Shown here one piece after another: positions 30,620-38,345 of a stretch of DNA of 64,000 nucleotides. Origin of the DNA: Macrostomum hystrix (Eukaryota; Animalia; Platyhelminthes); NCBI GenBank assembly GCA_950097015.1, contig CATNEN010000038.1:15252001-15316000 (forward strand), written 5' to 3'. Numbering within the stretch: the first letter of the stretch is position 1; each line of letters begins with the position of its first letter. The notes below the pieces were generated by a model. The model had not been told where the DNA came from. It was given only the letters and a program-made list of their open reading frames with translations, and searched no databases. The position numbers and the translations under genes were made by a program.

Positions 30620-33554
30620 TTAGTCCAGCAGTCTAACACAGCAGATGGCATCCTCTGGTCGCATTTCCAGCACGGCCACGCATCCGTCATTAAATGTGAA
30701 CGCGTAGTCGCCGTCAATGACCAGTTTGGCGTCCCACATGCGTGACCGGACCCGAATCCAATCGGTCATGCCGCGGCACTGATCGGCGGCGAATACGGAA
30801 TTAACTACTGGATCGCGTACCGCCCAGGCCATGCGCATCAGCTCCGGATCGTAGGTTAGGGCGGAGTTGTAGCTGCGGGCTATGCTGGCAATGTCAGCCG
30901 GGGAGTAACGCCTGGATGGACTGCCAGAGCCAGTCAGCTGATTGGCGTAGTGCAGTATCTCCTCCACCTGACTCTCGGCTGAGCACACCGGAGCACAAAC
31001 AATGGGAGGGAGACTGTTGAAATGGCGCTGCCTGCCAGTAGAGAGCGCCTACAGACTATTTCAAGAACATACTCACACAGGTGATTGATGTGAAAGTACC
31101 AGGACGTGGATCCTGTGCCGGTGCACACGGTAACGCCCGACGACTTCTGCTTGCGCATCCGGCCCTCCCTGTCTAAACCGATCTCGTAATAAGACACCCT
31201 GGCTGACAGCGACTCGCCTATGAACACTTCGTTCAGTGCAAACACTGGCAACGGTGTCAGCTCCTGCTCCTGCCAGTGCAGCTTCGGCTGACGCTTGAGC
31301 CAGGCCTCTTCAAGCTCTTTGTAGTGCTCAGAGTAGCGATACTCGGGATATTTCAGGTGCATGGACTGCAGTCGGTTAGCCGTCGCGGTGGAGGCTTCAT
31401 CTGATGCACCGGGACCAGCCTGACAGGGAAACCCGGTGGATAAGGAGACGCGAATGCGTTGACGCCACAGCCAGCGAAATCTGTGCGTCAGATGGGGACA
31501 ATAAAAAATAAGAATAATCACTACAGGAGGGCTGCTAGGAACCGATTCTAGCCTAGTTCAACCATGCGTATAGATTCTGATGAGAATCATTGGATTTCAA
31601 TTAATTTAGCTATTAAACACGAACACCTGATCCGATTTAATGACAGCTCACCTGCCAGCCAGCAGGGCGTCGAAAGCGTCAGGCGCTGACCTGCTAGACG
31701 GCATGCACAGGTGGCCCTCAGATTTTCCTGGATCAGTGTTAACGCCAATCAGCGGCTTCGTAGCTGATTTAATCCGACTGGCAGCCAGCAGGAAGGTGCC
31801 GTCGCCGCCAGCAGAAATGACAGCGTCCGCCCAGTCTATGGCAGCTAGGGTGTACATTGTGCGGGACACCACCTGGCACTCAACGCCACGCTGCCTGGTT
31901 AGCGGAAGGATGGGATCTGGATGAATATGCAGAATTCTATGGAGAAAACAACTTCTAGTCAGTAAACCATCTAATACCCTGGAATACATTCCATGCCATG
32001 CCAAAGCCCTGGATACCCATTCCAAAGTCCCGGAAACCCATTTCAAGACAGAAATCCATGAAGGCCCCGAAAACACATTACAAGCACTGAAAACACATTT
32101 CAAGCTTCAGAAACACATTACAAGCACTAAAAACACATTTCAAGCCACGACAACACATTCCAAACCCCCGAACACACATTCCAAGCCCCTAGTAACATTC
32201 CAAGCTTCGGAAACACATTCAAAGCCCATAAATAACATTGTAAGCTTCGGAAACACATTCCAAGCTCTAGTAACATTCCAAGCTTCGGAAAAACATTCCA
32301 AGCTTCGGAAACACATTCAAAGCCCATAAATAACATTGCAAGCTTCGGAAACACATTCCAAGCTCTAGTAACATTCCAAGCTTCGGAAACACATTCAAAG
32401 CCCATAAATAACATTGCAAGCTTCGGAAACACATTCCAAGCTCTAGTAACATTCCAAGCTTCGGAAACACATTCAAAGCCCATAAATAACATTGCAAGCT
32501 TCGGAAACACATTCCAAGCTCTCTAGTAACATTCCAAGCTTCGGAAATGTGAGAGCTCCGCTGCTTACTTTTCATTTAGTGCAATACTGTACGCCTGAGC
32601 ACGTTGTCAATTTATTACCTGCCTATCCTAGCCAGTATGTACATTAATACTGTTCAAATAATATATGTACGAGCATCAATGTACAAACATTGATGCCAAC
32701 GTGCTGATAAAATAATACGAGTATAAATGACCCGCGCTGCATGCGAGTGTGAGCGCGTACCTTTCTGACAATTAAATAGCTGATTCACTCAATTCTTCAC
32801 AGGAAACACTTTCGAAACCCATAAGTAACATTCCAAGCTTCGGAAACACATTCCAAGCTCTAGTAACATTCCAAGCTTTGGAAAGAAATCATTATGCTTT
32901 GAAACCCGAACCAGAATAGTTGTCCCACATTTTTACAATTTCAATTTTTTCACAATATTAACATCACTCAGCTACTAAATGCCTACTAAGCTACTAAATG
33001 AGGACCGAGCTTATAACTTAAAACTTTATTTGCTAAACTAGCAGCTATGAAAAAATGTTTCACATCCTACACCACAATAATTAGATTTAGTATCTAGAAA
33101 GTAAATCGATTGTTGAAGACTCGCAACTCACTGTAAATGAGCAACCAAAGAGTTGAGATTTCCGTGATGAATATTGTGGTGCAACAACAGATTATCATAG
33201 TCAGAGCCTTTGCGTTTTAACTGAAATAAAATGGATGGACAAGGTAAGCTAAAGCTATTAATGATGCCTATAGGCCATGACAGGATTGCGACTTACATAT
33301 TCTTTAAGCTTATCCTCAGATAGATGCGGATGCAGCGATCTCTCATACTCCAGCCTAGTAATTTTGGTTAGGAGCAAGACTCGGCTAGGCTGGAAGCCGG
33401 GCAGTTGTTGAGAGAAGCGCATGGCGGGCTGGCACCAGCCTCCAGCGGAAACAGATGTCCCAGATCCAGATGCTGTGGACAATTTTACTAAGCATGCGCG
33501 TTGCGTTGCTAGGCAACAGTCAACAGCACAGATGCGAACAATATTGCCAAGCAT
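30620..33554 (-). CDS. NADK2: NAD kinase 2, mitochondrial, 5 exons
   Basis: Exons 33554-33297, 33220-33132, 31894-31652, 31480-31077, 30978-30620, phases consistent. Motifs KITRLEYE, WADAVISAGGDGTFLLAAS, IGVNTDP..SEGHLC, ALNEVFIGE, QKSSGVTVCTGTGSTSW, VRSRMWDAKLVIDG; N-terminal extension resembles a transit peptide. Confidence 0.95.
32030..32547. repeat. ~20-bp subunits organised as a 78-bp repeat, NADK2 intron; detached copy at ~32805-32885
   Basis: AACACATTCCAAGCTTCGGA variants. Confidence 0.9.
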
Positions 33555-33998
33555 GCTTGTTTAGTTTGTGTATCAAACACTATTTAGTTTTGTCCTTTTT
33601 AGTCAGGCTAATAATTGATCAGAAACTTATTCATTGGATTCCAGATTTTATGGCATCACAATTGCTAAATAAACTTTCTGAAATCAAGTATAGTTGGTTA
33701 GACCTAGCACTTCAGTATAAGGCAAGAAAATATGCTAAAATACTTAAGTTGCCTATAAGTCTAACAGAAGGCCATATCTCTCAAAGTTGAAGTACTATAT
33801 GATGTCTGCATGTGTCAATTTTTCTGCTAATTCCTGGCTTTTCTAGCTCTGAATCTTAAACATAGCAAAGCAAACTAAAATATTTCTTGAGACAAACAAT
33901 TATACAAGTAATATAAAATTGTATTTCTATCATTTTAACAAATACTATTATATTTAAGTTTACCATATTTATCATATTTGTCTACTAACTTGTCTACT

Positions 33999-34117
33999 GT
34001 CTTAACTTATTTGCAGTCTTAACTTATTTGCAGTCTTAACTTATTTGCAGTCTTAACTTATTTGCAGTCTTAACTTATTTGCAGTCTTAACTTATTTGCA
34101 GTCTTAACTTATTTGCA
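33999..34117 (+). repeat. Perfect 17-bp tandem repeat x7 (GTCTTAACTTATTTGCA)
   Basis: Units start at 33999, 34016, 34033, 34050, 34067, 34084, 34101. Confidence 0.97.
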
Positions 34118-34198
34118 CTTCGGTGCAGAAAATGCCGCGACCTCCTCGTGGTCAAGACGGTGAGCCGCACTTCACTGCTGCGGCGGCCAACAGCGGCA
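34101..34198 (+). ncRNA. HDV-like self-cleaving ribozyme at the LINE 5' end
   Basis: P1 GTCTTA 34101-06/CAAGAC 34153-58; J1/2 hairpin TGCAC-TTCG-GTGCA; P2 TGCCGCG 34133-39/CAGCGGCA 34191-98; P3 ACC/GGT with L3 TCCTCGT; P1.1 CC 34144-45/GG 34159-60; P4 GCCGCA/TGCGGC; J4/2 GGCCAA. Confidence 0.85.
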
Positions 34199-34885
34199 GG
34201 ACAAAGCGGGGGCAGCGGAGCGCGCACCGGCGAGTTGAACACCGACGCGAGCGAAACCGGCGAGGCCGGCAACGTGGCGCCGCGCGCCGAGCTGCTGCCA
34301 TGCGAGTCTATCTGGGTCTTCCGGGTGGCGCCGGAGACCATGAGGCTCAACACTACCGAGCCCCAGGGCACACTCCGAGTCGGGACGCTGAACTGCCGCA
34401 CTCTCAAGGCCGCCTGGCGGAGAGGGTTGCTGGCGAAGCTAGCGCTCGACCTCAGCTGTGATGTCATCGAACTTCAGGAGGTGTCTATCAGAGCCGAGCC
34501 TGGACTTCACTGTGAGGACTTGGGCTCCGGTTGGACACTCTGGTACACCTCAGCGGATCAACGAGGCCGTGGAGGAGTTGGAGCACTGATCGGCCCGAGA
34601 CAGCAGCAGAGCTATCGCTGCTCTTCATTGTCCCCCCGCATGCTTCAGGTAGACGTCCGGCTTCGCGGCCGGAACGCTCGCCTGTTTTGCGTGTACGCGC
34701 CACCTGCCACCCGCCCAGATGAGGCTCAGGTCTTCTTCGAGCAGCTCTCTGCGCGCGTGGAGGAGACTGCGCAGCGCGACACGGTGGTCGTACTCGGAGA
34801 CCTAAGCGCAGTTCCGCGTAAGTCCGAGCGGTCGCTGTTTGTGACGCCCCGCGAAAACGGCAACACCCGCTGCCCAACATCCTGA
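34148..34885 (+). pseudogene. LINE apurinic-type endonuclease domain, truncated
   Basis: APE motifs end abruptly after PRENGNT and abut pre-RT sequence, implying a deletion near 34870. Confidence 0.85.
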
Positions 34886-34905
34886 CGCTGCCGCCAGAGA
34901 CGCCG

Positions 34906-36470
34906 TTGCCGTCAGAGGACAGTTTTAATGTTGCATCAGTCACCATGGCTGAAGTCGTGATGCTCGCCCAGAAGACGCCGGGCGGCAAGGCGCTGGTTCC
35001 GGACGAGGTGCCCATCGAGGCGCTGCGCATCCACTGTGTGGCCAGTGAGGTCGCCCGTGTGATGAACCGCGTGCTCTCCGGTGAGGTGGCACCCACAGAG
35101 TGGACCATGGCGCACATCATCGCCATTCCAAAGAAGCCGGGCACTACACGGCTAGACGAGCACCGAGGCATCTGCCTGCAATCCTGTGTTGCGAAGTTGT
35201 TCAACCGGATGCTGCTATCGCGGCCAACCGCGATATTGCTCCTAAGACAAAATTGTTCGCGGCCTGACCCGTCCAAGTGAACGGGATCCCTACCTGCGAC
35301 CTAAGCAGAACGGGTTTCGGCCCCACCGTGGCACAGTGACGCAGATCCTAGCTCTTCGCCCAACCATCGAGGAGGCGCGCAGTTGTTGTCTTCATTGACT
35401 TCATGAAGGCATTCGACTCGGTTGCGAGGGCTGCGCTCCCACATGTGCTCCGCGCGTACCATGTGCCAGAACAGCTAATCTCCGCCATCATGGCATTGTA
35501 CTGTGCTACGAGAGCAGCTGTGATGACGCCGGACGGCCTTTCGGACTCCTTCGAGACATCCTCCGGGGTGCTCCAGGGGGACACTCTAGCGCAATTCCTG
35601 TTCGTCCTGGTGCTTGACTGGGTGCTACGAACTGCTCTTCCTACCGACGAAGACAACTTCCTACTGCGGCGACGCGTGGGTCGACGTCAACCGGAGAAAC
35701 GGCTCAGCGTGCTTGGCTACGCCGATGACCTCGCCCTGCTGTCCTCTACCGTAGAGGGCGCTCAGCGCCAGCTGGACAAGCTGGTTAGCACTGCAGCGAG
35801 TGTCGGCCTGTTGGTCAACACGAAGAAGACCGTTGTGCTCTGCATGCCGGGCGACAACGAGGCCGCAATTTTCTGCCGAGGCGCTGACGGGCAGGTAAAG
35901 GAGCTTCCACGCTGTCAAGAGTTCGTCTACCTCGGCGGTCTGGTACCAGACGTCCGCGAAGATCTGCGGCGTCGCCGCCGGTACGCTTGGGCTGCCTTTC
36001 GTTCTGTGAGGGCGGTCCTGCAGTCCGAGGCCCTACCTGATCGCCAAAGGGCGGCGTTGTTCCAGGCGGTGGTCGAGACCGTCCTGTTGTACAACGCCGA
36101 GACCTGGACGCTGACGGATTCGCTCGAGCAGCAAGTCAATGCGGCGCACGCTGGCCTGCTACGCGCCGCCTTTAAGATCAGCGACGAGCGGATCACTAAC
36201 GCGGCACTTTATCGCCGCGCCGGCCTGACCCGTCCAAGTGAACGGCTGCGACTTCGGCGACTCCAGCTGGCAGGTCATATCATCCGCGCCGAGTCCTACT
36301 GCCCGCAGCCGGTGCAGGAGGTGCTGCTGCTAACCCTGCAGGCACCCTACCGGCGCGGCCAGGCCCGAACTCGGCGTTTCGTCGACTGCCTGCTGGCCGA
36401 TGCTGGCGCCCCGGACACTGCCGGCGGTGCGGCCTTTGTTCGCGCCCAGGCTCTGAAGTGTGCATTGTGA
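34906..36470 (+). pseudogene. LINE reverse transcriptase domain, disrupted
   Basis: ORF pieces 34906-35280 and 35403-36470 with QGD and YADD motifs; insertion and frameshifts at 35225-35400. Confidence 0.9.
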
Positions 36471-36924
36471 CGCTGCTTTTTTCCACCTGACAGCGTATAT
36501 TGTTGTTGTTTTTGTTTACTAAAAATTGAATACTTTCTATTTCAGTTGTAGCTACTTTACAGATAGCTTTGGTACTTGTTGGATTGTTTTTAGCTTTTAG
36601 CTAGGTCCTAAAGCTTTAAAAATTAGGGATACCACTGAAAAGCCTGAATTGCTTTAAACAATAATATACTTTCCAAGACTACAATGAGAAAGAATTAGAC
36701 AAGATAAACCAGATTTGGGCTATTCTGCAAAACTAACAGCCTAGCTCTTACATAAGAGGCAGAATTGTGGCAACCCACCAGGCTAACAAGCATCCCAGAG
36801 CATTATCAGTAGTAAGGGCAAGACAACTGCAAGAGGATCTGAATGTCAAGAAGGTCAATATTCTATTGGTTCCAACATCTATGCCAGACTACGGAGACTG
36901 AGAGGCCGCCGACCTTCCCGAGGT

Positions 36925-37625
36925 ATGGAGACACAGACGTGGAAAAATCGGCCAATTCAGCCTAAGCAAGCGGCATCCGCGGAGCCGAAGCCACGGCCGA
37001 TGGCACCTACGGATACTCCATCGTCAGCTCCATCGACGGTGCCGAAGTCGCAGCCGCAGCCGCTGATGTCGATCCCACAAGCAGCGCATCCGAAGGTGAC
37101 GCAGCAGCTGCAACAGCAATGCTCTCAGCCGCCGAGGATGCAGCAGCCGCAACAGCAATGCTCTCAGCCGCCAAGGATGCAGCAGCCGCAACAGCAATGC
37201 TCTCAGCCGCCAAGGATGCAGCAGCCGCAACAGCAATGCTCTCAGCCGCCAAGGATGCAGCAGCCGCAACAGCAATGCTCTCAACCGCCAAGGATGCAGC
37301 AGCCGCCACAGCAACAACAGCCGCCGATGGTGCAGCAACCGGAGCAGCATCAGCTGGAGGCTATAGAGCTAAGGTACACTGACGGGCCGATGGACATCAG
37401 CACCAGCCAGAATTGCACGGACAGCCGGATGAAGTGGATCCATTCAAGGCTGCCATGGATAGCCTCTCGCCGAGCCAACGTGACCATTATCGTCGGCATA
37501 TAATGCCAATGAAGCAATATCTGATGAACGTCGTGTATGCCTGACTGGACAGAGAGCTACCTAAATGCGAGATGGTGAAGTGGGCCCTAGACACATTGCT
37601 GGAATGCTACAATCATGAAAAGGTA
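36925..37625 (+). pseudogene. Gln/Pro-rich ORF of unknown function with 39-bp coding repeats, apparently decayed
   Basis: 192-aa ORF with QQPQQQCSQPPRM repeats; coding-like sequence continues in another frame (DEVDPFKAAMDSLSPSQRDHYRRHIMPMKQYLMNVVYA*LDRELPKCEMVKWALD) through a stop. Confidence 0.4.
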
Positions 37626-38345
37626 ATCATTGCTTTGTGTGGGCAAGTGGGTCAGCGGCTAGCGTTGCTGCCTCGCACTCCAATGGACGCTAGTTCGAAT
37701 CTCCCTTCAAGTCACAATTAATTTTGGGACCTGTTCGAGGGTTTGGACAGTAGCTACCGGAGGAGGTGCCAACCCATACCCATTCAATAATGTTTTATTT
37801 AATATTGAAATTAGGTGGCTGGGCAACTATTTATGTTGGCCCAGAAATGTACCTTTCCCACCTAGCATGAAATTTCAAGTTGTAGCCCTGCAACAACTAT
37901 CAATGTATGCTATTGCAATTGCTCAATCCGCATTATTACTTTGTGTATTCATTTTGTCATTTTTTGTGTCCTAATTGATTTCTGTCATTTTTTGCACTTT
38001 TCCTTTGTGTACTTTGTAACTTGTATATTTTTTGTCTGCAATTTTGTCACATTTTTTAATTCCAAAATAGCATTCAAGGGAAGCCAGGCAGGCCTAAGAA
38101 AATTCTACTGTATAATGCAAAGTTGAAATTATGCCAAATATCAATTATTATTTGTGATCTTTTTGTTGTTTAAATGCACTTGTAAACCACAGCCCAATTA
38201 CTATATATATAGTGAAATTTTTCTGTAAGAGACTCAACATGTTTTGTCCCAAGTATAAAGTGTTTAAGATAGGAAAGAAATAGAACTGAGGAGTAGTGGA
38301 TTAAGTGAAGTAAATTGAAATTGTTTCTTGAGTTGATTACTTAGT

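Follow-up and report, generated by a model that had tools for sequence, protein, structure and literature searches.

Positions 34101-34198 of a 64,000-nt stretch of the Macrostomum hystrix genome (assembly GCA_950097015.1, contig CATNEN010000038.1, positions 15,252,001 to 15,316,000 of the forward strand; hereafter the window, whose coordinates are used throughout) raise the question of whether a long interspersed nuclear element (LINE) of the RTE type begins here with a self-cleaving RNA, and what is the role of the tandem 17-nt repeat that runs into it from upstream. An initial annotation of this DNA had proposed a ribozyme of the type known from hepatitis delta virus (HDV) at the 5' terminus of an RTE-like LINE. 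We find that the HDV-like fold at this 5' end is genuine, and we put at roughly 0.85 the probability that 34101-34198 forms the HDV-like self-cleaving ribozyme at the 5' terminus of an RTE-type retrotransposon lacking long terminal repeats (non-LTR), cleavage itself being predicted. The ribozyme class is already known; the repeated cut-site module that precedes the ribozyme is an unusual feature and apparently an unreported one.

Reading the sequence, we recovered every helix that the initial annotation had listed, at the positions it had given, in the order P1-P2-P3-(L3)-P3'-P1'-P1.1-P4-P4'-J4/2-P2', which is that of a nested double pseudoknot. The elements of the fold are the following.

34101..34105, plus strand: P1 5' strand GUCUU, pairing with 34154-34158; the predicted scissile bond lies 5' of G34101.
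34112..34129, plus strand: J1/2 hairpin (P1.2), UGCAC 34114-34118, UUCG, GUGCA 34123-34127, extendable by U·G and U-A (minimum free energy (MFE) fold).
34133..34139, plus strand: P2 5' strand UGCCGCG, pairing with C34191 and 34193-34198.
34140..34152, plus strand: P3, ACC 34140-34142 with GGU 34150-34152, around L3 UCCUCGU 34143-34149 (pairing and Rfam core).
34154..34160, plus strand: P1 3' strand AAGAC 34154-34158, then the P1.1 guanines 34159-34160 (alignment of copies and families).
34164..34184, plus strand: P4, GCCGCA 34164-34169 with UGCGGC 34179-34184, 9-nt loop (MFE fold; 95.8% of cells paired across families).
34185..34190, plus strand: J4/2 GGCCAA, with the predicted catalytic cytosine C34187 (invariance across families).
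34191..34198, plus strand: P2 3' strand, C, bulged A34192 and GCGGCA (alignment of copies and families).

P1 consists of five contiguous base pairs followed by an A34106·C34153 mismatch; a seventh pair between A7 and U34152 was ruled out, U34152 being already engaged in P3. P1.1 would be formed by C34144 and C34145 of L3 opposite G34159 and G34160. When only nested helices are allowed, the MFE fold (-38.1 kcal/mol, z = -3.1) comprises the J1/2 hairpin, P2, P3 and P4 and leaves both P1 strands unpaired. The genomic HDV ribozyme is characterized by an L3 of sequence UCCUCG(N), a 2-bp P1.1 and a J4/2 cytosine followed by N-A-A, all of which recur here, P1.1 as a predicted pairing, together with the order of the helices. 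In contrast to the genomic HDV ribozyme, P1 has 5 bp instead of 7, J1/2 is long and structured, P4 is short, and G1 pairs with C rather than U, with the exception of one related family (family G, below) that has a G·U pair at this place.

By analogy with HDV, we take C34187 to be the equivalent of C75, as the initial annotation had done. Its role as the predicted catalytic cytosine is supported by the comparison of seven related families, in which the third base of J4/2 is C in 12 of 12 family representatives while the next base (C34188 here) varies. Similarly, the UCC at the start of L3 is invariant across the seven families. The suggestion that this particular copy might be attenuated relative to its family, on account of its short P1 with an A·C mismatch and of its P2 bulge (A34192), does not hold, as both features are found in all nine close copies compared, two of which have an uninterrupted open reading frame (ORF). 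The predicted ribozyme of the window copy is intact and matches the family version, from which it departs only by a 1-nt deletion in J1/2, a P4 G·U to A-U exchange and one L4 base.

The initial annotation could not tell whether this ribozyme family had been catalogued and had recommended a structural-descriptor or Infernal search as a check of the fold. No match was obtained in the 64-kb window at the Rfam gathering thresholds; under a relaxed threshold, the one relevant match was drz-agam-1 (RF01787), which aligned with 34122-34197 at 25.7 bits (E = 0.0044), below the curated cut-off of 37 bits by which membership of RF01787 is assigned. An intact copy of the element scored 27.9 bits against the same model, again below the cut-off of 37, and among seven other copies drz-agam-1 was found only in the family-A copy, sub-threshold. 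The class is known, and this family is not caught by Rfam 15. The likeness to RF01787 includes a 15-nt core (CGACCUCCUCGUGGU; end of P2, P3 and L3) identical to the consensus, an A-rich stretch preceding P2 and the C-N-A-A of J4/2. The two differ in that the P2 of the window ribozyme is shorter and that the Rfam model sets P1 on GGUGCAG, wrongly, because a 26-nt J1/2 with its hairpin separates the true P1 from P2.

The 5' ends of other copies, whose alignment the initial annotation had proposed as a source of covariation, bear the pairing out. The genome to which the window belongs (220 Mb, 42 contigs) was searched, and all covariation reported here comes from this one genome. The first 241 nt of the element gave 29 matches; among 15 complete close copies, 98.3% of the pair cells are standard pairs, and nine copies have U-A as the second P1 pair where six have A-U. 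A covariance model (R1), built from the close copies with nested helices only and with P1 left out, returned 68 matches, diverged families included. Parsed representatives fall into seven RTE families (A-G), with a P1 of 4-6 bp formed by the following strands (5' strand/3' strand).

Family A: GUCUU/AAGAC
Family B: GACUU/AAGUC
Family C: GUGUU/AACAC
Family D: GAGCCA/UGGCUC
Family E: GUUG/CAAC
Family F: GUUC/GAAC
Family G: GGGCC/GGCCU, with a G·U pair at the cut site

Because P1 was absent from the search model, its pairing provides a test that is independent of the alignment. The P1-bearing unit of each family (see below) forms contiguous runs of 4-6 pairs with the P1 3' strand of its own family and mostly of 1-3 pairs with that of other families, the exception being the family G unit with the family D strand; the matched runs add up to 34, a total reached by 0 of 1854 derangements of the family assignment. 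In an alignment of 32 sequences from several families, to which P1 and P1.1 had been added, 92.1% of the cells are paired and 17 of the 28 pairs have changed on both sides. Sliding the partners by 1-3 columns lowered the paired fraction to 24-43%, and none of 500 shuffles reached the observed values. Across families, changes on both sides affect all five pairs of the J1/2 hairpin and four of the seven P2 pairs, the closing G-C of P2 being C-G in families C, D and E; for the first pair of P3, 12 sequences have A-U and 18 have G-C. P1.1 (CC/GG) is conserved at ~92-97% without covariation and most of P4 hardly varies, such that both are uninformative on pairing.

These data bear on the explanation that the likeness to HDV arose by chance, or that it reflects the coding-driven conservation of a GC-rich N-terminal coding segment. 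The stretch from P2 to P2' is indeed coding sequence, GC-rich sequence folds readily, and the Rfam scores are sub-threshold. Slid partners and shuffles, however, do not reproduce the covariation, and P1 joins a non-coding repeat, which supplies its 5' strand, to the coding segment, and covaries. Between families A and B, the changes in the P1 3' strand alter the encoded peptide (QD to EV) while the pairing is kept, which argues for selection on the RNA. The z-score of the MFE fold also speaks against chance, and seven distinct P1 pairs rule out a set of recent duplicates without independent substitutions. We therefore regard chance or coding constraint as a barely credible source of the fold.

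The second part of the question concerns the repeat. The 17-nt array overlaps the predicted ribozyme in part and had not been included in the ribozyme claim of the initial annotation. Two features define it in the window.

33999..34117, plus strand: seven tandem 17-nt units GTCTTAACTTATTTGCA (Tandem Repeats Finder: period 17, 7.0 copies, 100% matches).
33990..33998, plus strand: candidate 5' copy of a target-site duplication (TSD), TTGTCTACT, adjoining the array; 8 of 9 bases match TTGTTTACT at 36512-36520.

Each unit combines the P1 5' strand with a linker and with the opening 4 nt (UGCA) of the J1/2 hairpin, and the last unit of the array is the ribozyme's own first 17 nt. The unit starts (33999, 34016, 34033, 34050, 34067, 34084 and 34101) coincide with predicted cut sites. 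The window copy is accordingly predicted to have seven equivalent cut sites, G34101 being merely the nearest. Cleavage 5' of G34101, as originally put forward, is thus retained as the nearest predicted site and dropped as the sole one, since it is one of seven that are identical.

The duplication flanking the window copy is short and hence only a candidate TSD. In addition, the 5' flank (33978-33998) carries TTGTCTACT twice, with AAC in between, just before the array, and the limits of the TSD are therefore ambiguous (9-bp or 12-bp candidate). A clean duplication of 10 bp (TTAGATAAGA) encloses the array together with the element in the intact copy L042. The array thus belongs to the element and lies within the (candidate) target-site duplication. 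Its position inside the candidate TSD implies that the source RNA probably began ~102 nt upstream of G34101, provided that the array has not grown since. A pre-existing satellite at the target was considered and ruled out, as a search of the 220-Mb genome for the two-unit pattern returned six family-A RTE 5' ends and no case of the pattern alone or downstream of an element, and as the duplication in L042 lies outside the array.

Arrays with a family-specific unit are found in each of the seven families, and the first bases of the unit covary with the P1 3' strand of the same family. The unit of family E is phased differently (GTTGCAGTCTATTTAAA) and still opens with the P1 strand; the single-unit family E copies L088 and L089 begin exactly at the P1 strand. 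In families A, E and G, the unit ends within the 5' strand of the J1/2 hairpin. Among 50 arrays, unit counts range from 1 to 59. The 5' ends of these arrays are clean at unit base 1 in 38 cases and carry a partial unit in nine, as compared to the ~6% (~1/17) of base-1 starts expected from random truncation; a few of the clean arrays continue past a 1-nt indel, and ~70% is the fair figure for base-1 starts. Moreover, 6 of 26 arrays open their outermost unit with T or A in place of G, versus 2 of 239 inner units that do not start with G (Fisher p = 1.2e-5), with examples at L046:1212, L095, L096, L056 and L059. Such an odd outermost base fits the last template nucleotide of an RNA, given that reverse transcriptases add or miscopy bases at the end of the RNA template, as described for R2 (PMC3774820).

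Together, these 5' ends indicate that the RNAs of the element begin at unit base 1, often in an outer unit. They therefore speak, indirectly, for use of the predicted scissile bond in vivo. They also bear on the proposal that the fold is conserved as a 5' RNA structure that has kept its HDV-like shape and lost catalysis, for example a platform resembling an internal ribosome entry site for cap-independent translation or a site bound by the protein that the element encodes, with the 5' end being set by transcription initiation. Such a structure would account for the start codon lying within the fold and for a P1 of only 4-6 bp across families, and HDV-like ribozymes have been reported to promote translation initiation (PMC6765202). 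Against it stand the invariance, in seven families, of the predicted catalytic C and of the UCC in L3, the covariation of P1 with the bases that open the element and the start of insertions exactly at the base that follows the predicted scissile bond; besides, the roles in translation and cleavage are not exclusive in the published cases. We consider a purely non-catalytic structure improbable.

Tandem monomers of widely varying array length are a feature of mouse L1. The 17-nt array could likewise be an internal promoter or initiator array, such that the base-1 ends are transcription starts and the ribozyme is of minor importance for where the ends lie. In agreement with this, 1-59 units head the copies of all seven families inside the target-site duplication, and their number varies as widely as that of the L1 monomers. 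A promoter, however, would not need the first 4-6 bases of its unit to covary with a P1 3' strand 50-100 nt downstream, and in families A, E and G the position of the unit's end, inside the J1/2 hairpin, points to a logic at the RNA level; RTE elements are, moreover, described in PMC6765202 as being without promoters of their own. A promoter array that leaves the ribozyme little part in setting the ends appears quite improbable to us; a dual role of the array, as promoter and as cut-site module, may apply.

Several points weigh against a self-cleaving ribozyme, our preferred explanation. The covariation is drawn from a single genome, and the alignment across families was fitted to the nested helices; P1.1 never varies across copies and families. 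Most of the fold is coding sequence, and selection on the protein could explain part of its conservation. P1 is short, with five contiguous pairs and then an A·C mismatch, and the inactivity of some HDV-like ribozymes has been put down to mismatches in P1 (PMC3774820). All Rfam families stay below threshold. Four of 15 RNA runs, all of them assembled contigs, were compared with the window; they covered it in fragments, showed neither starts nor ends and are uninformative on cleavage, the evidence from RNA being one RNA-library contig over 34113-34307. Finally, an internal promoter starting at base 1 would yield the same 5' ends as cleavage.

HDV-like ribozymes at the 5' ends of RTE and other non-LTR elements have been published as a class, as the initial annotation had stated; the closest example is the drz-Agam-2 family of Anopheles gambiae (Ruminski et al. 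2011, cited in PMC6765202 and PMC3774820). Similar to these, the present ribozyme would form the outermost 5' part of a promoter-less RTE, adopts a nested double pseudoknot with a structured J1/2 helix (P1.2), and would serve the same proposed roles in co-transcript release and in aiding translation. It differs by its flatworm host, by the repetition of the P1/P1.2 module 1-59 times and by an ATG at the J1/2-P2 junction. No paper linking Macrostomum with HDV-like ribozymes was found in our literature search. The ribozyme alone therefore adds a host lineage and a family missed by Rfam, and the repeated cut-site module is the interesting part.

The closest precedent for the array is the tandem duplication of P1-bearing 28S sequence at some R2 junctions. 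At R2 5' junctions of flour beetle, silkmoth, jewel wasp and others, a 13-28-nt segment extending from the cleavage site to the junction is duplicated in tandem, and the 'two regions can potentially anneal' (PMC3774820). R2 ribozymes with upstream 28S P1 strands thus share with the element described here that the P1 5' strand can be duplicated and that the outermost 5' position can show altered or non-templated bases. In contrast, R2 duplicates the 28S target sequence, at a minority of junctions and in 2-3 copies, whereas the unit described here belongs to the element, is absent at the target (no orphan arrays), reaches up to 59 copies and is the rule in seven families.

These comparisons suggest a mechanism, in which we infer catalysis, co-transcription and the choice of unit by analogy. 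The promoter-less element would be transcribed within a longer host RNA, as for R2 and RTE (PMC6765202, PMC3774820). The double pseudoknot would then fold, the J1/2 hairpin drawing P1 and P2 together, and C34187 would catalyse scission immediately 5' of the G that opens P1. In drz-Agam-2-1, a J1/2 helix (P1.2) that pinches P1 and P2 speeds the reaction up to ~1000-fold (PMC4908430). Cutting would presumably favour the nearest unit (G34101), because only this unit completes a 5-7-bp hairpin, the upstream units (UGCA-G) being limited to 4 bp closed by a large loop. The freed RNA would be uncapped and retain the entire ribozyme with the embedded start codon of the ORF; the ribozyme may aid uncapped translation from this AUG, and the RNA would be translated and then reverse-transcribed at a new site. 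The array may be kept or regrown by being inherited when outer units are cut, by slippage, or by the reverse transcriptase jumping between templates. The locus presents one predicted catalytic core facing several identical substrates at graded distances, which makes the site choice of a cis-acting ribozyme directly testable.

In sister families C-G (L062:1544-1580, L076:443-483, L079, L088, L070 and L082), a 28-50-nt hairpin is present in L3 after the UCC. It ends 1-2 nt before the P3 3' strand, and the usual L3 guanine is absent. The stems of this hairpin vary in sequence between families and sub-families, yet all of them pair. The ribozymes with an L3 hairpin gave no Rfam match in these sister families, and judged from their predicted folds they may represent a new structural subclass of HDV-like ribozymes. 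Such relatives would widen the HDV-like consensus and explain misses of descriptor searches.

Combining both features, we tentatively propose that the arrays, instead of being junk produced by slippage, are heritable, functional cut-site modules usable by one core, with an L3-hairpin subclass in families C-G, a model that is possible and, in our estimate, rather less likely to be true than not. If it is true, each 17-18-nt unit would be a complete module (P1 5' strand and start of P1.2), and a cut at an outer unit would hand spare modules to the daughter copy. Spare modules would shield the ribozyme when, as is typical of LINEs, integration erodes the 5' end; the array suggests in this way how a LINE that relies on its first nucleotides might survive imprecise 5' integration. 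Arrays could be rebuilt by the reverse transcriptase jumping from the 5' end of the RNA onto unit-length pieces, e.g. from a second cut. Under the same model, motif searches that assume an L3 of 7-8 nt would miss the L3-hairpin subclass. Within this genome, the 17-nt arrays mark full-length RTE 5' ends.

The identity of the element as an RTE-like LINE, claimed from the outset, was supported: when whole, it is ~3.2 kb long, with a single 1038-amino-acid (aa) ORF encoding an apurinic endonuclease (APE) and a reverse transcriptase (RT) and with a (TTG)n tail. This ORF is uninterrupted in copies L042 and L043, and Pfam places Exo_endo_phos at residues 89-328 and RVT_1 at 601-861. The two-unit copy L044 measures ~3.2 kb from its first repeat unit to the 3' tail. 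The 3' untranslated region (UTR) is 46 nt long and ends in (TTG)n, in line with the RTE architecture described in PMC2887409, i.e. a very short 3' UTR that closes with simple-sequence repeats and without poly(A). The element is thus assigned to the RTE type by the domains of its ORF, its size and its 3' end, as deduced from sequence. In the window, three further features belong to it.

34132..34134, plus strand: ORF ATG at the J1/2-P2 junction; the homologous ATG starts the 1038-aa ORF in L042.
34132..36470, plus strand: degenerate APE and RT ORF (Pfam Exo_endo_phos and RVT_1 on ORF pieces; BLAST against L042; translation).
36471..36517, plus strand: short 3' UTR with a (TTG)n-like tail (end of homology among copies).

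The start codon thus lies inside the predicted ribozyme, and the stretch from P2 to P2' encodes residues 1-22, the window reading MPRPPRGQDGEP... At the 3' end, the stop codon at 36468-36470 is followed by the end of the element at ~36510-36517 after TATTGTTGTTGTT..., other copies closing with (TTG)n; the homology shared with 40 other 3' ends breaks off at 36516-36517. More than 348 candidate 3' ends compared to ~30 5' ends correspond to the usual 5'-truncation profile of LINEs. The window copy is 94-97% identical to intact L042 in three BLAST blocks. Its ORF carries a frameshift near 34365, a stop codon at 34459-34461, a 787-nt internal deletion near 34868 and further indels, and on this reading the ORF is broken and the insertion is dead.

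Among database proteins, the nearest come from Macrostomum lignano (65-81% identity) and carry generic names only. In the closest public relatives (P0003, P0005 and P0008; 57-70% identical proteins), the N-termini retain 'GEP...AAA', which is the peptide encoded by P1.1, P4 and J4/2; its retention is only suggestive. A contig from a wastewater metatranscriptome (X8) spans 34113-34307 and has the family's extra A after 34128; it is a close relative of the element in the RNA library of an environmental sample, and is uninformative on cleavage. Among 80 distant RTE-like metagenome loci (19-45% identity), none matched model R1, and the 20 most complete of them contained no known Rfam ribozyme and one borderline match to a selenocysteine insertion sequence (SECIS), which does not show that ribozymes are absent.

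Further features surround the RTE copy in the window. At 31648-32103 on the minus strand, a 151-aa ORF matches the N-terminal domain of ATP-NAD kinase (PF01513, E = 6e-7) and probably represents a host-gene exon that lies on the opposite strand to the RTE copy, ~2 kb upstream of it. A tRNA-like stretch at 37650-37720 was examined with ARAGORN, which finds no tRNA there. Just downstream of the RTE copy, at 36925-37503 on the plus strand, lies a Gln- and Pro-rich 192-aa ORF without a Pfam match, which may be a host gene or another repeat; within it, positions 37101-37314 contain 5.5 copies of a 39-bp repeat that are 97% identical.
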